DNA of 64,000 nt, from IMG/VR virus record IMGVR_UViG_3300023313_000001, positions 124,001-188,000 of that record; one strand, 5' to 3'. This document shows positions 3,001 to 61,337 of this stretch, in pieces. The stretch's first letter is position 1. Each line of letters starts with the position of its first letter. The translations under genes and the position numbers were made by a program. Under the pieces are notes generated by a model that worked only from the letters and a program-made list of their open reading frames with translations, searched no databases and had not been told where the DNA came from.

Positions 3001-6000
3001 TTAGTTAGTACTGTGATATCCGACTCGTCTAATATGGACGAGTCTGTGGATATACTAATTACATTAGTATCAATGAATGCCCCAGATTGATATGCTAGTC
3101 TAGGTGTCCAGCTTTTCCACAATGTCTTAAAATCAGATGTGTTGGAGTCTAATGAGTTGAATCGTAAGTGTTCAATGTACCATTGATTAATACCATTAAC
3201 TTGTACTGGCTGACCATTTACTATGTCTCCGTGGAAAATAGTATCTCGGTGAGATGGTATTTTATTGGTGTCTGTATCAACAATCAGACCATCAATAGTT
3301 AATAAATTATTTCCCATTGCATAAAAAACAAAACGCATTGGTTGAGTTATGTATGCAATCTCAGCTAAATTATATCGATACAATATCGATCTACGCCAAG
3401 CATCTTCGGTTGGTCCATTGTCTCCAAACAAATATGGATCGTCTGCTGTGCTAGCTAGTGGAGCGTTGATCAACATAATTCCAGATTGTGCTGCAATAGC
3501 ATCATCTGCAACGATGGACGAGTTGTAATATGGAGGAAATAGATCGTCTGGACCGTATCCACCTTCGACTGTGGTATTATCAGTTACATTTACAGATAAT
3601 GCATTATATGTAGTTGCTTCTCCAGCAACTCCAGTGCTAATTAATCCATTAGGTAATTGTTTTCCTACGGGAACAATACCACTGGCGATAGTATTCCACA
3701 TCAACAATGACCAACGTCGGGTGGTTCCAGCGTATGTCAGACTCCACCAGGATGGTTCCACAGTATACCCCTGCAATACCCATGGTTCGAGATGTGGAAT
3801 TCTTGTGTTGTAAACGCCTTCGTATATGTCATACCATCGTGATGGAGGATTACTAATCCATTCTGTAGGAGTGTTTCCTGCGGCAATGTCATAGTCTACA
3901 ATATCCACTGATTTATAATTCCACGTGAAGGCATTGGTTGGGTCATAGTCTGATGCTAATGGGTTTACTATATGATATCGTTTTGCAAATTTTACAAATT
4001 GTTTAGTTTCATTTATAGCGAATTCACTATCAGAAGTTACCTGAGCGATATCATAGTTTAGTCCGGAAGGTACATTAGAATACAATCTGTTTTCCACTTC
4101 CAATAGTACATTTGCGTGGATTGTAGATAAGTCAATTAACATCCAAGCAGCTTCCTGGTCGACTGATACAACATATGTTCCAGCTATTTGTTCAAATAGC
4201 TGGTTTGTTGTTGTATTGTACCAAAAAACCCCGTCTGATGGATTAGTTGGAGCAGAACTACCTACACTAATCACATTGTATTTAAATAGCTCATTAGTAT
4301 CTGAAGAATAGTACATCCATCCTTTGGTAGCAGTTAACGGACGGGATGCTCTTGTGCCAGATGATGTGTTGGGTTGTTTGAGTATGGCTCCAATCATCTG
4401 ACGTTCAATAGTGTTTTCAAATTGTGGATTGGAAACATGTCCATCGTGGTGCCGAAGCTCAATTAACCCAATGCTTGAATCCACAACTAGTTTCGGTTCG
4501 ACTGCGTTTGTCAATTTAACATATGGTAACGTAGGAACCCAGTTACGTATACCCTTCCCAGTTAGTTCGTTATATGTTGTGCTGTCTCCAAATACATTGT
4601 CTCTAGCTCCATTAATCTCAAATCTACTAATAATGTGGTCGTTGATTGTGGATTGTAAATTCACTACAGAGCTGTCTGAAGTACTAGTGACTAATGTGAC
4701 CACATCCTCTTCAAAATAATCTCGCAGTATGTTCAATTGGTTGTCATACCTAATCATAGCAAATTCTAGTAACGTAGCTATAGTGACATTATCTACAAAC
4801 GTTGATGATATTAATGTATCAAATCCGTCATTATATTCCTTGATAAATCCACCCAACCCGTAATTCGGATTTAGTAATAATCGCCACCTGGTCTGTTCAT
4901 CATCGTTGAACCCTGGAGGACTAACTTGAGCTGATATTACCGATTTGAAGTGCTGATATAAGTCAACGCTGGTTAGTACACGGCGATTATCATGTTCGAG
5001 ATTATGGAACATTTGATCAGGAACTTCCCAGTCACCTGTGGGGTCACCCTGGGGAACCGTGTTACGATTTTTGTCTACATATTGTGGAACGTACTCTTCA
5101 TTATTGTTGCCATGGCGCCATATAGTATGCAATGTTGGAGTAGCATCTGTAGATTCGTCAAATTCACTATACGCAAACATCCCGTTAGTTGAAGAGTCTA
5201 ATAGTAGCTGCTCATAACTGAATACTGTACCAGACGATACTATTCGTTTATTAACTACAGAGTTCACTGGATAGGATGATGATTCCAAGAACTTCCACAA
5301 CGGAGTTGCTAGGTAACTTGTAGTTCCATCTAGGTTGTACATATTGAACAGTGGATATTGATTTGTAGTAGTTTTTTGTTGCTCCACTAATCTATAATTC
5401 ACTAAAGACTGGTATGTTGGAACGTATCCATCCACCGTCGAAGTTCGCAATTGGACTGATGCACGTCGTGCATCGGATTGTGCTGCTGGTCCCACTTCCA
5501 CTACAATTGTACCATATCCTATTCCTTCATAGAACACTATTGCATTCCCAGATACAACTTCATGATAAGTACCGTATTGACGCACACCATTTACATATAC
5601 CCTCAGCTCATTTGTGCCAACACTATAGGTTAAAGTTGATAAATTATATGTTAATGTTGTAGGACCTGTAGCTTCAAACGTTTCAGTTTCTGAAAGATAT
5701 AGCGGGTTGCCAGGTACTAGTGTATTATTAAGAGGTTGGTCGTTTACTGGAACGGCAGGATTGTTCCCATTGTATACCCAATGGTGGAAGAATCCTTTCC
5801 AGTCGTCCCCTCGAGAAGTATATCGTATTCCATGAATTCTTGTGTGATTGAATAATGCATCGCTCGGTAATGGAGCATCTAAAGTTGCAGTAATAACATT
5901 TCCGGATTGGGATATATTAACGATGGTGTAATATTGGAATGTTAACGTATTAACAAACTCAATGCTAATAGCTGCACCTATAACGAGATCCACAGACGCT

Positions 6001-33049: not shown

Positions 33050-33079
33050 AAAAGCCCGCATATAATGCGGGCTTTTTTT
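33050..33079 (+). terminator. Rho-independent terminator after the capsid gene
   Basis: AAAAGCCCGCAT-ATA-ATGCGGGCTTTTTTT. Confidence 0.9.
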
Positions 33080-33181
33080 AATCAACAAGGTAATAGTGGG
33101 GGCAAACACGGCAATACCGTAGAATGTTATATCAATGGCACATATAATAACATAGATACATTAATTGGAATTATAATAAGT

Positions 33182-34807
33182 ATGAGCTACCCACTAAGAT
33201 TGAAAAACATTGGTATAACGTTAATTGATCAATACACAACCGCAAAAGCTCACCACAGAATGAGATGTGACTCATGTAACCACGTATGGTCTGCCACTCC
33301 CATATCCAAACTACAAAACTACAAAAAATACAAAACCAACGGGTGTCCTGCATGTCATACTCACCGAAAGCGAACATTAGCTGATAAGATAAATCGTAAA
33401 AATATATCCAAAATGGAATCGTTGGGTTTCTCCATACAAAGTGAATACACTACATATAAGTCACCGATAGTGGTACGTAATAATAACTGTAATCATACTT
33501 GGACTACTACTCCAGAACGTATAATAGGATCTAATGTAAAATGTAAAATATGCAACGATTTAATCAAACAAACGAGGTTTACCATCCAAAATGCCAAACG
33601 CAAACAAACTTTCAACGATACAGCATCTGATTGGGAGCGCTACAAATCAGATGTACGCAAAAAAACAGAGCAACAGTTCATCCAACACCAATCCACACTT
33701 AATCCGAACAACCATCCTCGAGGTTTGGCTGGGTTGGAAGGGGTGTATCAACTAGATCACATTATCTCTGTGAAATGGTGTTTTGAGAATGATGTACCCT
33801 ATGATAAATGTAGTGATGTATCTAATTTACAATTCATACCGTGGCAACAAAACCTGCATAAAAAGCACCGAATGATAACAGACTATATACCCAAATCAAT
33901 CCAACCATTCTTCATAGATAATCACAGTTCAGCAAATTGTTTATTTGGCATACGTAAACTATTAACAGATAATGATATTATATTTCAGAAAGATGTACGT
34001 GTGTTGAACCCCTATAAGGTAGATATATTCATACCATCTACCGACACAGCTATACGTGTGTATGATATCAACACTGAATGTGAACAAAACATAATGTCCA
34101 CCAACATTCAACGCAACATCATTAAGATAGCAGAAAAACGGAATATTAGATTGATACAATTATTCAGTGATGAATGGATATCCAACCCAGAATTAATCGC
34201 AAGTAAAATACTACACATATGTAAAATGGGTACTACTCAGACTAGAATTCATGCTAGAAAATGTACCATACGCGAAATTAACTCATCTATCAAAAATGAA
34301 TTTCTAAATATGTATCATATACAAGGAACCGATAGATCACAAATATCAATCGGAGCTTATTATGGTGATAAATTAGTGTCTGTCATGACCTTCTCCAAAC
34401 CCAGAAAGATGATGGGACGAAGCCCAGTAGCAGGAGTATGGGAATTGAGTAGGTTGACTACTGATACCCATTTTAGAATACCAGGCATTGCATCCAAACT
34501 GTTAACTTATTTTAAACGCAACCATCGTTGGTCGAAAATTTATAGTTATGCTGACGCTAGGTGGAGCATTGGTAATGTGTATGAACAATTGAAATTTGTT
34601 AAAACACATCACAACAAACCATCTTACTGGTATGTTGTGGATGGTGTACGAAAACATAGATGGGGGTACCGTAAGGATTCTATACGAGAAAGATTTCCAC
34701 ATGTGTACCATAAATCTAAAACTGAGTATGAAATGATGTTAGAATTAGACATAGATCGTATATGGGATGCGGGTACAATCTTGTATCAAATAAATCGTAA
34801 ACAATGA
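33182..34807 (+). CDS. Free-standing endonuclease: Zn-ribbons + HNH + degenerate Vsr-like + Mom/GNAT-like domain
   Basis: CDSCNHVW/CPAC ribbons; LDHIIS...NLQFIPWQQNLHK; IHARKC...HIQG...WELSRL...SYADARWS...RIWDAG. The ORF-track start lies inside the terminator, so the start was moved. Confidence 0.72.
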   Translation: MSYPLRLKNIGITLIDQYTTAKAHHRMRCDSCNHVWSATPISKLQNYKKYKTNGCPACHTHRKRTLADKINRKNISKMESLGFSIQSEYTTYKSPIVVRNNNCNHTWTTTPERIIGSNVKCKICNDLIKQTRFTIQNAKRKQTFNDTASDWERYKSDVRKKTEQQFIQHQSTLNPNNHPRGLAGLEGVYQLDHIISVKWCFENDVPYDKCSDVSNLQFIPWQQNLHKKHRMITDYIPKSIQPFFIDNHSSANCLFGIRKLLTDNDIIFQKDVRVLNPYKVDIFIPSTDTAIRVYDINTECEQNIMSTNIQRNIIKIAEKRNIRLIQLFSDEWISNPELIASKILHICKMGTTQTRIHARKCTIREINSSIKNEFLNMYHIQGTDRSQISIGAYYGDKLVSVMTFSKPRKMMGRSPVAGVWELSRLTTDTHFRIPGIASKLLTYFKRNHRWSKIYSYADARWSIGNVYEQLKFVKTHHNKPSYWYVVDGVRKHRWGYRKDSIRERFPHVYHKSKTEYEMMLELDIDRIWDAGTILYQINRKQ

Positions 34808-41518: not shown

Positions 41519-42649
41519 ATGGTACATCGTAATAGGTTTATTACTAAATCTACAAAGGTGCACAATCACAAATATGATTATTCATTTGTTGAGTACAAAA
41601 ACACCCACACTCACGTAACCATCGTGTGTCCAAAACACGGAAAATTTTCCCAACTACCCATGTGTCATGTGAGAGGTGAAGGGTGTGCCCAATGTTTTGG
41701 TAACACTAGAAAAACCACAGAAGAGTTTATACATACAGCCTCTCAAATTCACAAGGGAAGGTATGACTATTCGTTGGTAGAGTATATAAATGTTAAAACT
41801 AAAGTTGACATTATTTGCAAACACCATGGGGTATTTAAACAGTCGCCAGACCACCATATTAATAAAAAAGGTGGGTGTGCTAAATGTGCGGGTAATGTTG
41901 TTAAAACTACCCCCGAATTTATATCAAAAGCCTTAAAAATCCACGGAGCTGCATACGATTATTCTGAAGTTACATACATCAATAGTAAAACACCTGTGCG
42001 GTTGAAATGCTCTAAGCATGGGATATTTACAATCACACCAGAGCAACATATACTCAAACATGGTGGATGTGGCAAATGTTCACCCACATTTCCCAGCAAT
42101 ACTACTAACTTTATTCAACGTGCCACAAACGTACATAATCACAAATATGATTATTCATTAGTTGAGTATAAAAATATCGACACTCCAATAACTATAATCT
42201 GTCCAAAACACGGAAAATTTACAACATCTCCCAAAATACATTTAAGAGGATCTCAATGTAAACAATGTTATTTAGATCAGAAAGTAGGATCATATACTGT
42301 AGATAGATTTAGATGCGATCCTGCGTTAGCTCAATCATCAGGATATGTATATGCAGTGGAGTTAACAGATTTGTCGTCCACTAAATTTATCAAGATTGGT
42401 ATATCCACCAACTATAAAAAACGCATCAATCAATACGTTAAAATGAACCCAAATGTATTACATTTACATAAATCCACTTTAAAAGATGTTTTTGGTACTG
42501 AACAACAACTATTGCAATTGTTGGCAAATGAAAAATATGATCCCCAAAACAGTTTTGGTGGACATACTGAGTGTGTCCAGTACAATGATTATACTATAAA
42601 TACTATAAACTCAACATTTAACAACCTGGTGGAACGATGTCAAACATAG
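41519..42649 (+). CDS. Free-standing GIY-YIG (T5orf172-like) endonuclease with four Cys/His repeats
   Basis: 4x H..(K/R/A)YDYS.V.Y.N..T.V...C.(K/H)HG.F...P..H....C..C; GYVYAVEL...FIKIGISTNYKKR. Confidence 0.78.
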   Translation: MVHRNRFITKSTKVHNHKYDYSFVEYKNTHTHVTIVCPKHGKFSQLPMCHVRGEGCAQCFGNTRKTTEEFIHTASQIHKGRYDYSLVEYINVKTKVDIICKHHGVFKQSPDHHINKKGGCAKCAGNVVKTTPEFISKALKIHGAAYDYSEVTYINSKTPVRLKCSKHGIFTITPEQHILKHGGCGKCSPTFPSNTTNFIQRATNVHNHKYDYSLVEYKNIDTPITIICPKHGKFTTSPKIHLRGSQCKQCYLDQKVGSYTVDRFRCDPALAQSSGYVYAVELTDLSSTKFIKIGISTNYKKRINQYVKMNPNVLHLHKSTLKDVFGTEQQLLQLLANEKYDPQNSFGGHTECVQYNDYTINTINSTFNNLVERCQT

Positions 42650-47112: not shown

Positions 47113-47151
47113 TATAAATACCTCAATAAAGTGATTTATTGAGGTATTTTT
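47113..47151 (+). promoter_or_regulatory. Late promoter overlapping a 15-bp hairpin that covers the downstream RBS (may also terminate sheath mRNA)
   Basis: TATAAATA 47113-47120; AAATACCTCAATAAA-GTGA-TTTATTGAGGTATTT 47116-47149. Confidence 0.75.
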
Positions 47152-47153
47152 AT

Positions 47154-48752
47154 ATGCAGGAAACGATACCATGCCAGATATGTGGAAAACACATGAAATG
47201 TATTGGGTGGAGACATTTACAACAACACAACACCACAGTTGACATATACAAACAACAATTTCCACAATCTCCTTTAAGGTCAGAAGCATCTACAGCTAGA
47301 AAATCGAAGTCTGCAAAACTTGCAAACGCCTCACGCAAGGGAGTAGCTAGATCTGATGTTGTGAAAACAAAAATATCACAAGCAAATAAAGGGAAGGATG
47401 CTTGGAATAAAGGCATAGGTATGTCTGACACTCAAAAACAAACACTTTCACAAACCAAGAAAGACCAATACGCAAATGGATCTACTATCCACTGGAATAC
47501 AGGCAATATAACTCCAAACGACGTCAAGAAAAAAATATCAGAAACAGCACTATCCCAATGTCGTACATACAGTGAACCTAGTAAACAAAAAAGACAATCT
47601 ACTATGCAGCAAAAATACGACGATGGATGGGTTCATCCTAGTCATCGTCCAGAGGTGCTTCAGCAACGCAAAAAAACAATGTTCGAACGATACGGCGTAG
47701 ATAATTTTATGCAACAACACATCAACCATTCGGTATTGTTAAAACTTAACGACCGTACCTGGTTAGAAGACCAACACATCACCCAACATAAACCAATCAC
47801 TCAAATTTGTAAGGATTTAGGATTACATTGGAAAAACAGCAATGCTATGGTTAAATCCCGGTTGCTTAAATTTGATATACCACAACAATATGACTTCTCA
47901 TGCTCTTATCCTGAACGTGAACTTAGAGACCTATTAACGGAATGGAATATACCCTTCATAGGGAATGATAGGACTCAGATTAAACCCAAAGAATTGGATA
48001 TATACATTCCATCCAAGTCAATAGCTATTGAATATTGTGGATTGATATGGCACTCGGATGCGTTTGTAGATAAGAACTACCACAAATTAAAAATGGAGCT
48101 ATGTGCTGCAGTAGGAATTAAGTTAATTACTATTTTTGAAGACGAGTGGTTGCATTGTCGTGATATAGTGATAAGTAAACTTCAACAGATACTTGGAATA
48201 TCAAACGATCAACGTATTTTTGCTCGCAACTGTAGTGTTATAGAAATTGAACACCAAACTGCTAAAGAGTTTCTGAACACTAATCACATTCAAGGATATG
48301 GACCATCTAGTATCAACTTAGGGTTGCATTATAATTCGGAATTAGTGGCAGTGGCAGCATATAAACGTGACGGATCCAGTGACTTTATACTAAACAGATT
48401 TGCAACATCGTGTAGTGTGATTGGCGGATTTACTAAGCTTGAACGGTACTTTGATCGTAATTACCATCCTACAATGGTGTCAACATTTGCTGACATGAGA
48501 TGGAGTATTGGAGACTTATACAAAAATACTGGATACACCTTAGTTAACCTGTTGCGTCCAGATTATGCATACATCGACAAATCTTCATTCACTAGAATAC
48601 ATAAATTCAACTTTCGACACCACAATTTACATAATATGTTGGACGTATACGACCCATTACTTAGCGAAACCGAGAATACCAGAGCTAATGGGATACACCG
48701 AATTTATAACTGTGGTTTAATGAAGTTTCAACGTACTAATATGTCCGAATAG
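47154..48752 (+). CDS. Free-standing endonuclease: C2H2 finger + NUMOD3-like + Vsr-like + Mom/GNAT-like
   Basis: CQICGK...HLQQH; KISQANKGKDAWNKG; ELDIYIPSKSIAIEYCGLIWHS; IFARNC...TFADMRWS...RIYNCG. Confidence 0.78.
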   Translation: MQETIPCQICGKHMKCIGWRHLQQHNTTVDIYKQQFPQSPLRSEASTARKSKSAKLANASRKGVARSDVVKTKISQANKGKDAWNKGIGMSDTQKQTLSQTKKDQYANGSTIHWNTGNITPNDVKKKISETALSQCRTYSEPSKQKRQSTMQQKYDDGWVHPSHRPEVLQQRKKTMFERYGVDNFMQQHINHSVLLKLNDRTWLEDQHITQHKPITQICKDLGLHWKNSNAMVKSRLLKFDIPQQYDFSCSYPERELRDLLTEWNIPFIGNDRTQIKPKELDIYIPSKSIAIEYCGLIWHSDAFVDKNYHKLKMELCAAVGIKLITIFEDEWLHCRDIVISKLQQILGISNDQRIFARNCSVIEIEHQTAKEFLNTNHIQGYGPSSINLGLHYNSELVAVAAYKRDGSSDFILNRFATSCSVIGGFTKLERYFDRNYHPTMVSTFADMRWSIGDLYKNTGYTLVNLLRPDYAYIDKSSFTRIHKFNFRHHNLHNMLDVYDPLLSETENTRANGIHRIYNCGLMKFQRTNMSE

Positions 48753-49504: not shown

Positions 49505-51181
49505 CTACATGTTGTCTTTTTTATTCCACACCCATACTGAATTACCACAATCCCAGATCCTGTCATAGCCATTGTTTACCATATTATCCCATTCCGTCAA
49601 TTCTACATCAAACATCTGTAGTCTATCTTTCAACTTATGTTTTTGGAATTGCATTCTACTGAACAAAACCAACCGATCTGAATTGTGGAAATACATATAA
49701 TTCGGTGGACTATAATGACTGAAACTGAAACTCAATTGCCCATACATAGCTCCAGTGTTCCACGATCTATCAGCGTATGACACTACAGACGATGGGTGGA
49801 TTTGTCTAATAAAATGTTTGAATAATTTAGATGCCCCACCAACCACTGTGGAGTCAATTTTTGAACAATACCTCAATAACTCGTACTCGTATTTGTTAGA
49901 GAATCTACTTTTACCAAACGTCATACATGCCACCAACTCACTACCATACATTAACCCGTATCGCACATGAGACTTACATGCCCGCTGTAGGTGGTTAACA
50001 TCTACAAAAATATTAGCAGCCTTAGAGCTAAGTTCTACAATAGTAGTTGACCGTCCATAGATTCTACTACCTGATACTCCCAATTTAGCTCGGATCCTTG
50101 ATTTTACCACAGACTGGTGCAGCACCCACTGGTCCTGGCGTAAATGTATCAACTGTATTCCTTGAGTATTACACATTTTGGTCTTCATCAAATGGTAATC
50201 TTTCGTCTTTCCTTTTGAGTCAGAATGCCAATATATTCCATTAAACTCTATTGCGATACCATGGTCTGGCAACACTATATCTAACTCATATGGTTTAATA
50301 ATACTCCGAACATGTCTATTTACTGTTACATTTAATGACTCCAAAAAAGAACAAACTTCGTTTTCTCCAGTAGAGTTGGATGATGACACCGGTAAATCGA
50401 AATATTTGAATCTGGACGTTAATAATGGTTGTGACACGTTTAATGTTTTCGCAATTTCTGTCAACGATCGTCCCTGCATATGTTGATCCAATAACCATTT
50501 CGGGTCATGCAGTTTTTCATATACATCTATCCAGTCATCTCCATTAAATCCCGTATATCTTGCCCAGGTAGCAGCACGTTCATATAACTCTCCCGAATGT
50601 AGGTGGTGTACACGAGTATGAGAGATCTGTTCTCGAACAGAATCCGTCATGGCATGTGTGGTACCGTAACGTTCCATACATGTTTGTTGTTTTTTATCTT
50701 GAGATTGAGTAGACGACACATTCCATTCGGTACCATACTTACGTAAATTAGTTTGCTTTAACTTAGCTTGCACTTGGGTAGACTGTAAAGCATGCTTTAC
50801 TCCCAACACGTTAAATCTATCTTCAGCCACCCTATGGGTCATTTTAAAATAATTGTCTACACCATAATGGTTCATAGTCGTCTGTTTACGCTTAGTTAAT
50901 AAATCACCACCCTCATGTACACATTTATTTGAGCAAAATTTGCGATATTCGTGTGTTGAATCATTCCAAGTAACTGTGCCAACCTTACAATGGGAACACA
51001 CTACCAACTCAGATTCCTTATGTATAATATGCCACATTCGCTGTCTCAGCCCAGATTTTATTGGTAGAAACAAGGTAGCCTTTTTAATAACATCATATTT
51101 TACGGTATTTAACTTGATCCAAGACCTAAAATTTGACAATGCTGATAGTTCTATAATTATTTCTTGTAATTTGTGGTCCAT
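49505..51181 (-). CDS. Free-standing endonuclease, Vsr-like + Mom/GNAT-like fusion
   Basis: CSHC/FCSNKC, (K/R)YG repeats, ELDIVLPDHGIAIEFNGIYWHS, ACMTFGKSRFS.KYEYELLRY, SYADRSWN, RIWDCG. Confidence 0.78.
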   Translation of the reverse strand: MDHKLQEIIIELSALSNFRSWIKLNTVKYDVIKKATLFLPIKSGLRQRMWHIIHKESELVVCSHCKVGTVTWNDSTHEYRKFCSNKCVHEGGDLLTKRKQTTMNHYGVDNYFKMTHRVAEDRFNVLGVKHALQSTQVQAKLKQTNLRKYGTEWNVSSTQSQDKKQQTCMERYGTTHAMTDSVREQISHTRVHHLHSGELYERAATWARYTGFNGDDWIDVYEKLHDPKWLLDQHMQGRSLTEIAKTLNVSQPLLTSRFKYFDLPVSSSNSTGENEVCSFLESLNVTVNRHVRSIIKPYELDIVLPDHGIAIEFNGIYWHSDSKGKTKDYHLMKTKMCNTQGIQLIHLRQDQWVLHQSVVKSRIRAKLGVSGSRIYGRSTTIVELSSKAANIFVDVNHLQRACKSHVRYGLMYGSELVACMTFGKSRFSNKYEYELLRYCSKIDSTVVGGASKLFKHFIRQIHPSSVVSYADRSWNTGAMYGQLSFSFSHYSPPNYMYFHNSDRLVLFSRMQFQKHKLKDRLQMFDVELTEWDNMVNNGYDRIWDCGNSVWVWNKKDNM

Positions 51182-54940: not shown

Positions 54941-55005
54941 ATGTGGAAGGTCAGCAACACCCGTCAGTACGGTAAATACTACAACATCGATAGGTATAGT
55001 TCACA

Positions 55006-55755
55006 ATGAATAAAACTCTCAACACGTTATTAGCTCACTTCACTTCGGAACAAAACTGGTGGGACCAGTTCCATCTAGCATACCTGATGAATCCCACAGC
55101 ATTCATAGAAGACTGTATCACACTAAATACAGCCCCTATACAATTACTTCAGCATCAACGTGACCTCGTTGAAATATATGAATATCATGACCATGTGTAT
55201 GTTGCATCTGCTAGACAAGTGGGGTTATCTACAATAAACAATGCATTTATGCTTTGGCAATGTGTATTCCAACACGACACATCTATTCAAATTTTTGCAC
55301 AAGACGATACTGGAGCATGTGATCTGAGAACAATACGGCAAATGTATGACTCTCTACCTAACCAAGTACGAGCTAGAGTGAAAATTCAACTTCATAAAAC
55401 TACTCATGGAATACTATCGTTCGACAATGGGTCCTCTATCACTGTACTGTCAACCAGTTTCAATGCTCTGCATGGCATCCCACCAGCAGATGTACTACAC
55501 ATAGTACGTCCATCTATGTTTTCTACCAAAAACTTACAAGAAGTAGAACAAGCGTTGATACACCCAACTGTTCATGCTGGTGGATCAATACAAGTCACCG
55601 ATTGCATCAATGCTAACCTAGAGTTAATAAACACGCATGCTATGTTTGCTTGTAAAATTCCATGGAACGTGGTGCCTGGACGAGATCAACAATTCAAAGA
55701 CGACACTATTCGCAGAATAGGACAGCAAGCCTGGAATGACGACTATGGGGATTAA
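55006..55755 (+). CDS. Degenerate paralog of the terminase large-subunit ATPase domain
   Basis: SARQVGLST (Walker A K->L), FDNGSSI, VLHIVRP at the Walker B position, IPWNVVPGRDQQFK. Confidence 0.75.
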   Translation: MNKTLNTLLAHFTSEQNWWDQFHLAYLMNPTAFIEDCITLNTAPIQLLQHQRDLVEIYEYHDHVYVASARQVGLSTINNAFMLWQCVFQHDTSIQIFAQDDTGACDLRTIRQMYDSLPNQVRARVKIQLHKTTHGILSFDNGSSITVLSTSFNALHGIPPADVLHIVRPSMFSTKNLQEVEQALIHPTVHAGGSIQVTDCINANLELINTHAMFACKIPWNVVPGRDQQFKDDTIRRIGQQAWNDDYGD

Positions 55756-55757
55756 AT

Positions 55758-57443
55758 GTGGCTAAAAATATAAATATAAAAAAAGCATACACTACCCAAG
55801 ACCTCTCAACTGAACAGATTACAGAAATCGACAGATGTATGTACGGGTGCATTAACCAGACCACTGGCATCCAGGAATGTGGGCCTATATACTTTGCCAA
55901 AAATTATGTTAGAATCCAACACCCCAAACGTGGAGATGTACCATTTCTATTATATCCATACCAAGAAAAAATGATGGACACATATCTCAACAACAATAAA
56001 GTGGTGGTGTTATCTGCTCGCCAAACAGGAAAGGAACAGCCACATACTGCACGTATAGCCACTCCTACCGGTTGGGTCACTATGGGGGACATTCAGCCTG
56101 GGGATACCGTATTGACTCCTGATGGTAGCACGTCAACAGTCATCCAAAAACATCCTCAAGGAACTAAGCAAGTCTATCGTATTACGTTTGACGATGGGTC
56201 GTTTGCTGAATGTGGAATTGATCATTTATGGAGTTGTAATATTCATGATAGATTATCTTCCGACACTAGCACCAGTACAGTGCCAACATCTGAATTAATT
56301 ACAATGATGGATAACGATCACGTATACCAATATCGCATAGACATACCTCTAGTGGATGTAGTCAATTTTAATGAGCAACAATTGACAATGGACCCGTTTG
56401 AGCTTGGTGTGCAATTGCGAACAAATACATCTTCACAATCTCACATACCAGAAGTATACTTACGTAGTTCACCAAACCAACGTACAGCATTATTGAACGG
56501 ATTGATATCCAATAAATCCATCAGCAAGAAATTTACTGTTTCTCATATAACCTCAAAACAACTACGGTCAGACATCCAACAACTAGTATGGAGTCTAGGT
56601 GGTACCTGTTCATATAATACAACAAGTGAACAAGACGATACTGTGTACGAACTGTATATAGAACCACCATCACTATCAGGTACACTTAAACGAACAATTA
56701 TATCTATCAATGCTGTGAGACACGAACAATCATCGTGTATATCAATCGATCACCCAAAACAGTTGTATATCACAGACAATTTCACTGTCACACATAACAG
56801 CATAACATCCGCCATATTTTTATTGTGGTTTGCTATGTTTAATCCTGATAAGACATTATTAATCGCAGCCAACAAAAACGATCTAGCCATTGAGATGATT
56901 CAACGTATCCAGTACGCATATGAGTTCTTACCCATGTGGTTGAAACCTGGGGTTACTGACGACGGTTGGAATAAACATAGTATAAAATTTGATAACAAAT
57001 CTCGCATTGTTTCTACTGCAACATCTGCTAACTCTGGTCGTGGTATGTCTATATCGCTTTTGTATTTGGATGAATTTGCGTTTGTAGCACCAAACATTCA
57101 AGAAGAATTTTGGACCTCAATTCTACCAACATTATCTACTGGTGGTGCTTGTATAATGTCGTCCACACCAAACGGAGCAGTGGATAAGTTTGCTAGCATT
57201 TGGCGTGCAGCCAATATGGAAAATAATACTGATGGTCTGTTGTTTAAGGCTATTGAAGTCAAATGGGACGAACCACCAGGACGAGGCGAACAATTTAAGC
57301 GTGATCATATTGTAATGTTGGGTGAACTTAAATGGGCTCAGGAATATGAGTGTTGCTCAGGTGATACTGTAGTAACATTACAGGATGCTGTTGGTAATAT
57401 ATTGCAAAAAACGCTAAAGGAACTATACAGTGAGTTGGGTTGA
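55758..57443 (+). CDS. gp17: Terminase large subunit, N-terminal ATPase part, with cis intein and split-intein IntN
   Basis: LYPYQ, SARQTGK|intein|SITSA, GRGMSISLLYLDEFAFV, SSTPNG, WAQEYE|CCSGDT... Confidence 0.93.
   Translation: MAKNINIKKAYTTQDLSTEQITEIDRCMYGCINQTTGIQECGPIYFAKNYVRIQHPKRGDVPFLLYPYQEKMMDTYLNNNKVVVLSARQTGKEQPHTARIATPTGWVTMGDIQPGDTVLTPDGSTSTVIQKHPQGTKQVYRITFDDGSFAECGIDHLWSCNIHDRLSSDTSTSTVPTSELITMMDNDHVYQYRIDIPLVDVVNFNEQQLTMDPFELGVQLRTNTSSQSHIPEVYLRSSPNQRTALLNGLISNKSISKKFTVSHITSKQLRSDIQQLVWSLGGTCSYNTTSEQDDTVYELYIEPPSLSGTLKRTIISINAVRHEQSSCISIDHPKQLYITDNFTVTHNSITSAIFLLWFAMFNPDKTLLIAANKNDLAIEMIQRIQYAYEFLPMWLKPGVTDDGWNKHSIKFDNKSRIVSTATSANSGRGMSISLLYLDEFAFVAPNIQEEFWTSILPTLSTGGACIMSSTPNGAVDKFASIWRAANMENNTDGLLFKAIEVKWDEPPGRGEQFKRDHIVMLGELKWAQEYECCSGDTVVTLQDAVGNILQKTLKELYSELG
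56034..56798 (+). mobile_element. Class-3 cis intein (255 aa) with decayed LAGLIDADG domain, inserted in Walker A
   Basis: EQPHTARIATPTGW...CGIDHLW...SSCISID...FTVTHN|S. Confidence 0.88.
57351..57440 (+). mobile_element. Split intein N-fragment (30 aa)
   Basis: CCSGDTVVTLQDAVGNILQKTLKELYSELG-stop after extein QEYE. Confidence 0.85.
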
Positions 57444-59061
57444 TGTTTATAAGTCATTAACATACTTAGTTGATGAGTTTAAACACAAACCTCCATCAAG
57501 TAACTTTAGTAGGTGGCGAACTGAGGAATTCCACTTATTGAAAGAAGCTACATCATTTTTATCAGATGCTGCATCTGCCAGTGAGCGGTTGTGGTACATT
57601 GATCATAGACAACACCATGCAACTTTGTGCAGAATATGTAATAAAAACTTATTATCGTGGATTAATAAAGAACGAGATTACAGAGCCACATGCGGTAAAT
57701 GTAATGGTAAACTACCTGCAACTGCAGCTAAACGCAAAGCAACTATGCTGGAAAGATATGGTGTTGAAAGTTATACTCAGCATGACCAATTCAATGACAA
57801 ACGTATATCTACCAATCAACAACAGTATGGAACTGATTGGGGACTTCAATGTCCACACATTCAAGATAAACGCAAAAGTACCATGATGGAACGATATGGT
57901 GCTGAAAACACTTTACAGTCGCCTGTACTAAAACAAAAAGTCATTAATACTCTTCAACAAAAATATAATGTCAAACATAATTCACAAACAACACATTGGC
58001 GTGAGTCTGTAAGGCAAACTTTTCTTGAAAACCTGGGTGTTGAACATAATACCCAACTTCAAATAGACCCAGTATCGTTAATTAAGTTAAATGATCGGAA
58101 TTATCTAAAATCAAAACATATCACTGAACAAATTCCACTACATGTTATAGCCAAGGAATTACAAGTTAACCAAACCACAGTAGCCAATTATTTTAGAAAA
58201 CACGATATAACTATTCAACGATTTCCGAAATCATATGGTGAGCGAACACTAAGCGAATTTATCCAACAACTAGGAATAATTGTAATAAATGGAGATAGAT
58301 CAATAATCCAACCATACGAATTAGATATTGTATTACCTGAACATAAAATAGCCATAGAATACTGTGGTTTATTCTGGCACTCTGAAACTTGTGGAAAAGA
58401 CAAACGATACCATGAAATGAAAATGAAGTTAGCTAATGCAGCAGGGTACAGACTGTTAACAATATATGAAGATGAGTGGGTTAAACGAACCAACCAAGTC
58501 AAGAATAAAATTAAACATATGTTAGGAATGTCTGTGGATAAAGTATATGCTAGAAAATGTACTGTCGAACTAGTAGACAACAAGCAGGAATTTTTCGATA
58601 AACACCACATCCAAGGATCAGGTCCAGGCAGCATAACATTCCAGTTAGTGGTGAATGAACGACCTTGTGCCATGATGACATTTATTCAATGTAAAAACCA
58701 ATCTTTCTATTTGAACAGATATGCAACATCAATGAGTGTCGTCGGTGGTTTTAGTAAATTGTTGAAACACTTCGAAAAAAATATTAAATGGTCTAAAATA
58801 ATATCATTTGCAGACCTGAGGTGGAGTGATGGTAATTTATATCGTCAGTGTGGTTTTGAACTGGATGGAATAATCCCACCTGATTATTATTACTCACCCA
58901 ATGGCGTAGATCGATACCATAAATCTAATTATAGACATGCACAATTACCTAAGCGATTAGCTAACTACGATCCAACCAAAACTGAATGGGAAAATTGTGA
59001 TGTCAATGGAATTCATCGTATTTGGGATTGTGGTAAAATGAGGTTTGTGAGATATGCCTGA
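57430..59061 (+). CDS. Endonuclease (Vsr-like + Mom/GNAT-like) between the two split-intein halves
   Basis: CRIC/CGKC, ERYG repeats, ELDIVLPEHKIAIEYCGLFWHS, VYARKC...SFADLRWS...RIWDCG; overlaps both flanking ORFs. Confidence 0.8.
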   Translation: MSWVDVYKSLTYLVDEFKHKPPSSNFSRWRTEEFHLLKEATSFLSDAASASERLWYIDHRQHHATLCRICNKNLLSWINKERDYRATCGKCNGKLPATAAKRKATMLERYGVESYTQHDQFNDKRISTNQQQYGTDWGLQCPHIQDKRKSTMMERYGAENTLQSPVLKQKVINTLQQKYNVKHNSQTTHWRESVRQTFLENLGVEHNTQLQIDPVSLIKLNDRNYLKSKHITEQIPLHVIAKELQVNQTTVANYFRKHDITIQRFPKSYGERTLSEFIQQLGIIVINGDRSIIQPYELDIVLPEHKIAIEYCGLFWHSETCGKDKRYHEMKMKLANAAGYRLLTIYEDEWVKRTNQVKNKIKHMLGMSVDKVYARKCTVELVDNKQEFFDKHHIQGSGPGSITFQLVVNERPCAMMTFIQCKNQSFYLNRYATSMSVVGGFSKLLKHFEKNIKWSKIISFADLRWSDGNLYRQCGFELDGIIPPDYYYSPNGVDRYHKSNYRHAQLPKRLANYDPTKTEWENCDVNGIHRIWDCGKMRFVRYA

Positions 59062-59413
59062 TAAGATGAAATATAATACAACTGGTTATCAAATACTAAC
59101 AGATAGTGGGTTCAGACCGTTTGTGGGCATATCAATGATGGGAAAACAGATGCTCCTAAAGTTTGAGTTCAACGATGGAACATCAATTGAAGTTACTCCA
59201 GGCCATAAATTTATCTATAACACCAAACTGATTGACGGTGAGATTGTAGGTGTACCTATTCATGCAAACGTGTTGTCAGTGGGTGATCAAATATCCACGA
59301 TGGATGGCGAAGTTGAGATCGTAAGTATATGTGAAAGCACTGACCAGCAAACGTACGATTTAATTGAGGTTGGTGATCACAAGTATAAAACTAACTCAGT
59401 AATATCCCACAAC
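59054..59413 (+). mobile_element. Split intein C-fragment (~120 aa)
   Basis: YQILTDSGFRPF...VTPGHKF (block B TxxH)...TYDLIEV...NSVISHN|C. Confidence 0.88.
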
Positions 59414-60175
59414 TGTGAATTTTTATCATCAGATCCATTGTTAATAGATTCCATGGTGATTGGACAACTGGAAAGTAATGTCAGCTTACCTATCCGCGAA
59501 GATATGGGATTTAAATTTTGGAAACAACTACTCCCAAATAAAACATATTTAATTGGAGTCGATCCGGCAACTGGATCTGGTGAGGATTTTTCTACAATAC
59601 TAGTATATGATTTTCAAGATCTATCCATGGTTGCAGAATGGCGGTCAAACACCATGTCGTCCCCTCAATTGTATGCTGCACTCAAATTGGTACTCAAACA
59701 AATCGAATCGCACCAAAGTATGGCATATTTCTCAATAGAAAACAATGGTGTGGGAGAGGGGGTGATTGCGTTATATGAAAATGACGAAAAATTACCGGAA
59801 AATTGTGAGTTTGTATCTGAAGAAGGCGGAAACCGATTGGGCATGCGGACTGAAAGTCGTGTCAAACTACGAACATGTATGGTGATGAAACAATTAGTTG
59901 AATCTGGAAAAATAGAGATTAAATCTGAAATGATGCTGCGTGAATTGAAAAGTTACGTGTCCACTAGAGGATCGTACGCTGCTCAAATAGGTGCAACAGA
60001 TGATCTTATATCTGCATTGCTAATTGTACTCAGACTATTATCAGAGATGGCAACGTATGAACAACGAGCTCATGAATTGATGAACCAATATGATGATATT
60101 GGTTCATTTAGTGCTGAAGATACAGAGGGAGTATATGATGATGATAAATTTATTCCGGACAGCTTTGTTTTTTAA
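59054..60175 (+). CDS. gp17: Split-intein IntC fused to the terminase large-subunit nuclease domain
   Basis: SHN|CEFLSSD, YLIGVDPATGSGEDFS, IENNGVGEG, GATDDLISAL. Confidence 0.92.
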   Translation: MPDKMKYNTTGYQILTDSGFRPFVGISMMGKQMLLKFEFNDGTSIEVTPGHKFIYNTKLIDGEIVGVPIHANVLSVGDQISTMDGEVEIVSICESTDQQTYDLIEVGDHKYKTNSVISHNCEFLSSDPLLIDSMVIGQLESNVSLPIREDMGFKFWKQLLPNKTYLIGVDPATGSGEDFSTILVYDFQDLSMVAEWRSNTMSSPQLYAALKLVLKQIESHQSMAYFSIENNGVGEGVIALYENDEKLPENCEFVSEEGGNRLGMRTESRVKLRTCMVMKQLVESGKIEIKSEMMLRELKSYVSTRGSYAAQIGATDDLISALLIVLRLLSEMATYEQRAHELMNQYDDIGSFSAEDTEGVYDDDKFIPDSFVF

Positions 60176-60224
60176 TATAACCCAAGTATAGTCACAATAT
60201 CATTTACTAACACAGAACATTCCA

Positions 60225-61337
60225 ATGTCTACTACTTACAAATACCAGTTTGAAGAATTCTATACCAATTTCCAACAGATGTATCTATTCCAACGTATGG
60301 TGAACACCACTGAAAATACCCATTGGCATCGGGAAGATAATGTTGGAGTTCATACCAACATGGTAGTACAAGAGTACATTCAACGATCACCTAAACGATG
60401 GTCACGAGCAGACTACCTAGGTGCAATTGCCTGTGCATTCCACGATGTTGGAAAACCCAACGCAGAACAGTACATCCAAGATAGTAGTGGAGGCCATAAC
60501 ACTTACAAAGGCCATGAACAGATATCAGCTAGAAAATTTGAACTATTTACATCAGATAATCCAGATTGGCTCTTGCTAGATCCGATGGACATTGCAGCAG
60601 TTTGTTGGATGATACAACACCATCTACCATACAGAACTACTAAAACACATAAATTAAATGCCCTCAAGACTACGGCAACATTCTTTAATGTTTTCGACCA
60701 ATTCCTTCGTTTGGTAATGTCTGATCAATATGGTCGTGTATCAGATGACCACGACTTAAATAAGTTATCATTGATGGAGTGGATCATGCAGTTCATATTT
60801 AAATCCACTAATAAAGAATGTTGGTTGAATATTCATAGTAAACCAATAGTATACATGTTAGTGGGGGCATCTAGTTCTGGTAAGTCTACCTTAACAAAAC
60901 AATTACTACAAGAACACGGAGCATATAATGTGTCTGTGTTCAACATGGATAAATGTAGATTAGATTGGTATTCATTAGATGACTCTAATAATTCTGAGTT
61001 GGATAGATACCAGTACGCTTTCAAACAATCATGTGATGATCCAGATTTTACCAAACGGACAAATTCTGTATTCACAGACATGCTGCAAACTCAGAAAACT
61101 GTGATAGTTGACAACATGAATCTCACATCTAAATCCAGAAAGCGCATCTTTACGGAAGCTGCTAACAATGGATACCACGTTATCAGTATTGTCATGCAGA
61201 CTCCTTTATCTACTTTATGTGACCGTAACGAACTACGTGGAGATAGATCCCTCCCGAACGACCTTCTCATAAATATGTATTCCAGACTATCGTATCCAAC
61301 CATAGCTACAGAATGTCATGAAATTAGGGTGAATTAA
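60225..61337 (+). CDS. HD-domain phosphohydrolase fused to a P-loop polynucleotide-kinase-like domain
   Basis: WHREDNVGVHT, AFHDVGKP, GHEQISA, QHH; GASSSGKST, VIVDNMNL, RNELR. Confidence 0.8.
   Translation: MSTTYKYQFEEFYTNFQQMYLFQRMVNTTENTHWHREDNVGVHTNMVVQEYIQRSPKRWSRADYLGAIACAFHDVGKPNAEQYIQDSSGGHNTYKGHEQISARKFELFTSDNPDWLLLDPMDIAAVCWMIQHHLPYRTTKTHKLNALKTTATFFNVFDQFLRLVMSDQYGRVSDDHDLNKLSLMEWIMQFIFKSTNKECWLNIHSKPIVYMLVGASSSGKSTLTKQLLQEHGAYNVSVFNMDKCRLDWYSLDDSNNSELDRYQYAFKQSCDDPDFTKRTNSVFTDMLQTQKTVIVDNMNLTSKSRKRIFTEAANNGYHVISIVMQTPLSTLCDRNELRGDRSLPNDLLINMYSRLSYPTIATECHEIRVN

Follow-up and report, generated by a model that had tools for sequence, protein, structure and literature searches.

A fractured TerL gene in a T4-like jumbo phage, with a predicted trans-splicing split intein and a class 3 cis intein

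How could a phage obtain a working packaging motor from a large-terminase (TerL) gene that is interrupted at two sites and broken into separate reading frames? This question is raised by a locus in IMG/VR record IMGVR_UViG_3300023313_000001, a 229.5-kb contig from a microbial-mat metagenome, of which a 64-kb window (the whole stretch of DNA analysed here) was examined. Three plus-strand open reading frames (ORFs) follow each other in successive +1 reading frames: ORF1, an endonuclease ORF, and ORF3. ORF1 carries the ATPase half of TerL and a short N-terminal intein fragment (IntN), and ORF3 carries the C-terminal intein fragment (IntC) and the nuclease half. We consider it highly probable that this is the functional "fractured" TerL gene of a T4-like jumbo phage, with a product predicted to arise by trans-splicing at QEYE/CEFL and class 3 cis-splicing at GK/S. 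In what follows, L-numbers designate viral contigs of relatives and P-numbers proteins from a protein search; the intein-free TerLs P0016 and P0019, both 528 aa and from that search, serve as extein reference. The locus comprises the following parts, in window coordinates.

55758-57443, plus strand: ORF1, TerL ATPase half and IntN, 561 aa; Pfam Terminase_6N
57430-59061, plus strand: middle ORF (endonuclease), up to 543 aa; DUF7487 and, weakly, two Vsr/restriction-endonuclease-like families
59054-60175, plus strand: ORF3, IntC and TerL nuclease half, 373 aa; Pfam Terminase_6C
55758..56033, plus strand: TerL extein N1, 92 aa, ending in Walker A (...SARQTGK); residues 1-92 of P0016/P0019
56034..56798, plus strand: contiguous cis intein of class 3 type, 255 aa; PDB matches 6bs8, 6rix, 6riy
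56799..57350, plus strand: TerL extein N2, 184 aa, the remaining ATPase domain, ending in KWAQEYE; residues 93-276 of P0016/P0019 at 87-93% identity; Terminase_6N
57351..57443 (codons 57351-57440), plus strand: IntN, 30 codons (CCSGDTVV...KELYSELG) and a TGA stop; CatN (6dsl_A) match
59054..59413, plus strand: IntC, 120 aa, with blocks B (TPGH), F (YDL) and G (SHN); CatC (6dsl_B) match
59414..60175, plus strand: TerL extein C, 253 aa, nuclease domain, beginning CEFLSSDPLLIDS; residues 277-527 of P0016/P0019; Terminase_6C

The exteins define what has been interrupted. The three pieces (92 + 184 + 253 = 529 aa) align one after the other to the intein-free proteins, gapless and without overlap, at 70-93% identity. 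At the second junction P0016 and P0019 read KW[KR]QEYE-CEFLSSDPLLIDS. Because the pieces abut exactly, the insert at each of the two sites is an intein-sized element whose removal restores a normal TerL. An earlier note on this DNA had proposed a 529-aa TerL once both inteins are removed, which this sum bears out. It had also described an ATPase ORF ending in QEYE, an intein piece and a stop, which reads in the sequence as KWAQEYE/CCSGDTVV...SELG, and an ORF starting 1.6 kb further on with TPGH, YDL, SHN and then CEFL; the ORF3 ATG at 59054 indeed lies 1,610 nt past the ORF1 stop. Its two overlaps fared differently. The 8-nt overlap of the middle ORF end (59061) with the ORF3 start (ATGCCTGA) is firm, whereas the 14-nt overlap with ORF1 holds only with an endonuclease start at GTG 57430. 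Both ORF junctions are bridged by independent unitigs of the source DNA run, with no variant and no alternative joint.

Comparison with proteins of known structure identifies the split intein. Searched against all PDB chain sequences, IntC has as its top match 6dsl_B, the "Consensus engineered intein CatC" (E 2e-7; E 3e-9 with a few extein residues added). A profile built from 36 natural IntC sequences reaches CatC at E 7e-23, ahead of gp41-1 and VidaL (E 7e-9). The single PDB match of IntN is CatN (6dsl_A), which covers the whole length including the extein EYE/EFE; its E-value is weak (0.064) because the fragment is short. In the six-frame translation of the window, the IntC-family profile matches ORF3 at E 7e-43 and otherwise only the ORF1 cis intein, weakly, so that the ORF3 match is far from chance. 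Cat was used as a proxy for AceL-TerL and GOS-TerL, and GOS-TerL was compared by its published description. Review literature describes Cat as the consensus of GOS-TerL and AceL-TerL (30 + 104 residues), AceL-TerL as 25 + 104 residues, and GOS-TerL as 37 + 115 residues with Ser1 and a +1 Cys.

Host, insertion site and split point all agree with this type. The 6dsl chains keep EFE before a mutated first residue (C1A, LSGDT...) and ...VSH(A)CES after a mutated terminal Asn; hence their insertion site is the same as the window's EYE/CEF. The context of the AceL/GOS/Cat type, E[FY]E/CEF in a large terminase, is present in the window as QEYE/CEFL. The split point equals that of Cat (the S2 site), with a 30-aa IntN holding block A only and an IntC of more than 100 aa holding blocks B, F and G. 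In AceL-TerL and GOS-TerL, according to a 2026 paper, the break follows helix alpha1, the first helix, and the window IntN likewise ends after its first helix. A contiguous 145-aa mini-intein in L032 and L037 is covered by IntN (residues 1-23) and IntC (residues 38-145); mapped onto L032, the break falls within residues 24-37. On contiguous inteins with a solved structure, the match of the IntC profile extends from about residue 28 to the end, as in gp41-1 (residues 29-128 of 128). The class 1 catalytic set is complete (C1, T48-P-G-H51, H119-N120 and C+1). Host, site, split point, catalytic residues and the CatC/CatN matches thus uphold the earlier assignment to the atypically split AceL/GOS type, of which homology, junctions and split point mark the window intein as a new member.

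The catalytic residues are also those that relatives retain. In an alignment of 36 relatives with IntC and the C-terminal TerL half, whose IntC identity ranges from 27 to 69%, H51, H119, N120 and the +1 Cys are invariant, as is F23. The IntN tails of relatives measure 27-45 aa and start with Cys, rarely Ser; among 46 TerL-N halves with short tails, the first intein residue is Cys in 43 and Ser in three. Junction-motif counts taken from the first regular expressions, which missed many sequences, are lower bounds. Against L002 (69% identical), the non-synonymous difference is 0.21 in IntC, 0.25 in IntN and 0.21 in the nuclease extein. With synonymous sites saturated at about 0.75-0.78, these values show the intein pieces to be as constrained as the terminase itself.

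Such conservation bears on whether a peptide bond is formed at all. The two halves might instead associate non-covalently, with the intein fragments serving as interaction domains, as in the split NrdA of phage Aeh1. The literature contains fragmented phage enzymes with interaction domains derived from mobile elements, and the spliced product is here a prediction. Yet association requires neither Cys1, the block B His, the terminal His-Asn nor Cys+1, and all of these are invariant or nearly so in diverged relatives. Moreover, AceL-TerL, GOS-TerL and Cat, the nearest characterised relatives, splice. Non-covalent association is consequently judged very unlikely.

The second interruption lies in the ATPase half. 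A contiguous 255-aa intein splits the Walker A motif at GK/S. It begins with Glu, has H-x-W in block B and a Cys in block F (SSCISID), and ends in T-H-N before the +1 Ser. In the PDB it is matched best by three class 3 DnaB inteins, 6bs8, 6rix and 6riy, and the W, C and T of 6bs8 and 6rix find their counterparts in its IDHLW, SSCISID and VTHN motifs; published papers tie 6BS8 to the class 3 DnaBi1 intein. The window intein therefore shows what defines class 3, namely the Trp(B)-Cys(F)-Thr(G) triplet with neither Cys nor Ser nor Thr as residue 1. In its middle, LLNGLISNKS (LLQGIMDTGD in L166) resembles a truncated LAGLIDADG motif without the acidic residues, a comparison made by eye and unscored; hence the insert seems decayed and the resident endonuclease dead. 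The interruption of Walker A GK/S by this intein supports the proposal in the earlier note that the terminase would require both a class 3 cis-splice and a class 1 trans-splice. Nor is this genome the only one with the combination. L011, L074 and L166 carry the same EQPH... intein at GK/S, and L166 shares the window's whole architecture: it has the class 3 cis intein, the split intein and a middle ORF, which there measures 419 aa and has no Pfam match.

The GK/S site also carries split inteins in other relatives, as seen in L005 (3488-5953), L006 (1047-4205) and the proteins P0077, P0081, P0107, P0115 and P0116. Their N pieces measure 35-39 aa and start with Cys; their C pieces reach up to about 170 aa (counting the open frame upstream of the extein) and start ...DWCL...GELH. 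At this site in L006, an endonuclease lies between the intein halves on the opposite strand. These may represent a second, uncharacterised type of atypically split TerL intein. A third intein site, near residue 90 of N2, is occupied by contiguous and split inteins in L014-16, L037, L045, L065-67 and the proteins P0242-P0252. The intein there is 28-33% identical to the IntC of the QEYE/CEFL site, and some TerLs hold three such inteins. In L005, L037 and L045, TerL is encoded in three or more pieces.

The gene between the split halves belongs to a recognisable endonuclease lineage. Its product matches nearly the whole profile phrog_3339, "homing endonuclease", at E 1e-113, and shares 30% identity with phage U5 Hef and with annotated Campylobacter-phage homing endonucleases. 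Residues 270-362 match the nuclease domain of I-Bth0305I (PDB 3r3p, E 4e-4). Pfam assigns DUF7487, while MTES_1575 and Vsr stay below their curated cut-offs. The paper on I-Bth0305I names the catalytic residues and places Hef-type enzymes in an "EDxHD" family; the corresponding residues are kept here as E271, D298, E310, H317 and D324 (motifs GERT, ELD, IAIEY, FWHS and KDKR). The gene is thus probably intact and predicted to encode an active Hef/EDxHD homing enzyme, presumably the agent that split the intein and spreads it. Two start codons are equally possible. GTG 57430 has AAGGA 8 nt upstream and gives the 14-nt overlap with ORF1; TTG 57538 has GAGGA 10 nt upstream and corresponds to residue 37, where homologue alignments begin.

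The structural-gene block of the window is rich in likely free-standing homing endonucleases. Among the ORFs at 49505-51181 (minus strand), 47139-48752 (plus), 41519-42649 (plus) and 33065-34807 (plus) is another gene of the Hef/EDxHD family, which shares 32% identity with the intein-borne gene. The others of these four encode ROS_MUCR with NUMOD3, DUF723 with T5orf172, and a zinc-finger protein directly after the major capsid gene.

With all three genes on the same strand, no terminator-like site found on the plus strand between 55510 and 60400, and the ATGCCTGA stop/start overlap, co-transcription is probable, and translation of ORF3 is possibly coupled to that of the endonuclease at the 8-nt overlap. 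A promoter scan gave fewer sigma-70-like sites than shuffled sequence. Upstream RNA hairpins, reported for some loci by Dassa et al. (2009), were not found upstream of the endonuclease, where fold z-scores range from -0.5 to +0.8.

A second alternative is that an endonuclease has broken a terminase now in decay, while another part of the 229.5-kb genome supplies a functional TerL. The visible part of the contig is 64 kb, and a paralogue of the TerL ATPase at 55006-55755 indicates that duplication has occurred here. All three reading frames are nevertheless intact, the exteins are 70-93% identical to intact TerLs without an indel at the junctions, and amino-acid change is strongly constrained. 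Many independent contigs show the split layout and no other TerL, and the upstream paralogue has neither the Walker A Lys, the Walker B acids nor a nuclease domain. Decay is therefore regarded as extremely unlikely.

The paralogue deserves description in its own right. The plus-strand ORF at 55006-55755, just upstream of TerL, is 29% identical to TerL residues 62-275 (E 5e-22), and reads SARQVGLS where the Walker A Lys is replaced. It ends in ...AWNDDYGD, exactly at the position of the split-intein site in TerL (KWxQEYE/). Similar paralogues flank TerL in L046, L056, L063, L069, L033 and L082-83, and no equivalent was detected in the ORF upstream of TerL in phage XacN1. It could be a duplicated and inactivated TerL-N half with a regulatory or small-terminase-like role.

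How the intein site is occupied in relatives was surveyed across 80 viral contigs and several looked-up contigs. The following states were observed.

Site empty: most loci
Contiguous 145-aa mini-intein at the site: L032, L037
Split around an EDxHD endonuclease: the window, L006, L010
Split, with an unrelated HNH endonuclease: L002, L009, L014-16, L041-42; 8-nt overlap in L002
Split, probably with an HNH endonuclease: P0002, the closest relative; 305-aa middle ORF, 8-nt overlap
In-frame fusion of the endonuclease with IntN: L065-67
In-frame fusion of the endonuclease with IntC: L063
Split without endonuclease: L005 (47-nt gap), L007, L008, L049, L068, L076
Halves separated by 5.2 kb and 13 genes, of which one is on the other strand: L167

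Where the halves are dispersed (L167) or the endonuclease is absent (L005 and others), no rescue at the RNA level is available, and the family would therefore rely on protein trans-splicing. Overlaps between endonuclease and IntC measure 8-17 nt in L002, L009, L011, L014, L041 and L082 and 62 nt in L010; L006 has none.

Two relatives fit the states above less simply. L056 (906-3428) was considered as a clean 325-aa contiguous intein with a nested domain and rejected. Its TerL frame is open for 325 codons across the site, with an Arg/Ser-rich insert of low complexity, and the inner HNH ORF (1765-2373, 202 aa) runs in another frame. The endonuclease may here be overprinted on a loop of a contiguous intein. 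In L004, a 295-kb contig, the 6 kb to each side of IntC-TerL-C contain no TerL N half, the contig is absent from the matches of the N-half metagenome scan, and no such half was recognisable in the protein search. Upstream of IntC-TerL-C, at 3319-5955, L004 encodes a PIF1-type helicase that carries a LAGLIDADG intein.

Hardly credible, in turn, is a removal or bypass of the middle ORF, as an intron or by recoding (frameshift), that would leave a contiguous precursor to cis-splice. The three ORFs do overlap in successive +1 frames, in some relatives in-frame fusions join the endonuclease to IntN (L065-67) or IntC (L063), and the L056 TerL frame is open across its insert. Rfam, however, gives no match at E<=1 in 55000-61000 and thereby no group I or II intron, RNA at the junctions folds no more stably than shuffled sequence, and the overlaps contain no slippery site recognisable by eye. 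Nor could such a route serve relatives whose halves lie 5.2 kb from each other or are set apart by a 47-nt intergenic gap, each with its own start codon.

Several observations weigh against a functional TerL matured by both kinds of splicing. The locus was found in the source DNA run only, and three small metatranscriptomes of the same study gave no match. The view covers 64 kb of the contig, and a second, intact TerL may lie elsewhere. Which start codon the endonuclease uses is ambiguous, and with it the 5' overlap. The first residue of the class 3 cis intein is Glu, and its splicing is predicted.

With these points taken into account, we still infer a spliced and functional TerL, and the following course of events is drawn by homology with AceL-TerL, GOS-TerL and Cat, which trans-splice. 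A Hef/EDxHD endonuclease gene would have inserted into the intein coding sequence about 30 residues in, past the first helix; with that gene inside it, the intein is made as two polypeptides. Provided that the locus is expressed, one product would be the TerL ATPase half with the 30-aa IntN and the other the 120-aa IntC with the TerL nuclease half. The short IntN would dock onto IntC, which is nearly complete by itself, the usual thioester relay would be performed by Cys1 and the +1 Cys, and cyclisation of Asn120 would accompany formation of the peptide bond between QEYE and CEFL. The ATPase half would also shed the class 3 cis intein from its Walker A loop, and the product would be the 529-aa TerL. 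The endonuclease is presumed to cut alleles that lack it and thereby to spread the unit of endonuclease and intein.

Conditional (redox) splicing is known for mycobacterial DnaBi1. A more speculative reading, put forward tentatively and considered unlikely, is that the two-step maturation acts as a post-translational gate on packaging and that, in parallel, the TerL clade is a natural series of gene-breaking stages. The class 3 cis-splice would restore the Walker A loop and the Cys-dependent trans-splice would join ATPase to nuclease. If so, the motor would become active only once both halves accumulate, perhaps only in a permissive redox state. The series would then keep every stage at one site: no intein, a contiguous intein, an endonuclease that is overprinted, joined to one half or the other, free-standing or lost, and dispersed halves.

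The arrangement itself has been described before. Dassa et al. (2009) reported it, and their loci include a gp17-like terminase with this same unusual break and a C part of 122 aa. In that work, Vsr-like endonucleases occur in half of the loci, and in 15 loci the 3' end of the endonuclease overlaps the downstream intein part by 6-69 bp. The "fractured gene" layout is present in the window, with ORF1, endonuclease and ORF3 all on the plus strand, and its 8-nt overlap falls within that range. The window is a second, complete example of this type of terminase locus.

Related loci are abundant. A search with ORF3 gave 570 matches, and among the 120 listed most are about 355-395 aa with an N-terminal IntC. 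The N-half search gave 327 matches, and among the 120 listed most are about 295-312 aa and end in a short IntN. Well over 100 split-type clusters occur among the matches listed. An exhaustive profile search recovered 2,023 representatives at 50% identity (E<=1e-10), many of them TerLs with one to three intein copies at three sites, contiguous or split. The description of such inteins as rare in the earlier note thus holds for characterised examples and fails in nature, where each half has hundreds of metagenomic matches.

These results extend current understanding rather than change it. Characterised split inteins with a short IntN number a handful (AceL-TerL, GOS-TerL, Cat, VidaL and PolB16) and are useful for protein semisynthesis. 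To these the window adds a natural pair from a phage of a microbial mat, with Cys1, Cys+1 and an IntN of 30 aa. The survey outweighs the single locus, as it offers a large pool in which to seek faster, more tolerant or mutually orthogonal pairs. Moreover, an essential packaging motor would here depend on two different protein-splicing chemistries, and the same intein site in related phages displays most states of the 2009 gene-breaking model.

The genome that carries the locus also encodes a T4-type portal, major capsid protein, sheath and baseplate hub within the window. Its nearest sequenced phages by protein are the Xanthomonas jumbo phages XacN1 (whose TerL is 48% identical to the window's extein C) and Xoo-sp13, in which TerL is contiguous. 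A megablast search of 55000-61000 against 50,697 phage records found no match, and the genome is accordingly without a close sequenced relative. NCBIfam returned no family for any of the four proteins. After TerL, a plus-strand gene at 60225-61337 encodes an HD domain and a P-loop kinase with matches to AAA_33, KTI12, Zeta_toxin-like and other P-loop families; in our own reading, its product would act in RNA repair or resemble a polynucleotide kinase. AAA_33 genes occupy the same position after TerL in L002, L166 and L167 and lie farther downstream in L005.

Among known systems, GOS-TerL, reportedly characterised by Bachmann and Mootz in 2015, comes close in organisation. Like the window, it shows a gp17-like myophage terminase with an N-proximal break, a C part (122 aa in Dassa et al. 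2009, 120 aa in the window) with every splicing motif but the first, a free-standing endonuclease gene between the halves and a +1 Cys. It differs in having Ser1 and a 37-aa IntN, where the window has Cys1 and a 30-aa IntN. AceL-TerL and Cat share the extein context (EFE or EYE before C...HN and CE after it), the 30-aa IntN in the case of Cat, and an IntN that ends after the ...(E/D)LY..L helix. CatC is shorter, at 104 aa against 120 aa for the window IntC, which has about 14 extra residues after block B, and the sequence identity is moderate. Furthermore, Cat is engineered and AceL cold-adapted, whereas the window intein is natural. VidaL and PolB16 likewise have a natural split close to their N terminus, which leaves a short IntN. 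However, their split lies one element earlier, after strand beta2 (S1 site, IntN of 15-16 aa), and they belong to other host proteins or other types.

The remaining two components have characterised counterparts as well. Like mycobacterial DnaBi1 (6BS8) and M. chimaera DnaB (6RIX), the cis intein lacks an N-terminal nucleophile and carries the W/C/T triplet; in contrast to these DnaB inteins, it resides in TerL, begins with Glu and holds an endonuclease insert that seems decayed. The middle ORF shares with I-Bth0305I and Hef a Vsr-like nuclease domain and the conserved E, D, E, H and D, but at 543 aa it is larger, and it carries DUF7487 repeats and a Cys4 motif where I-Bth0305I has NUMOD repeats.

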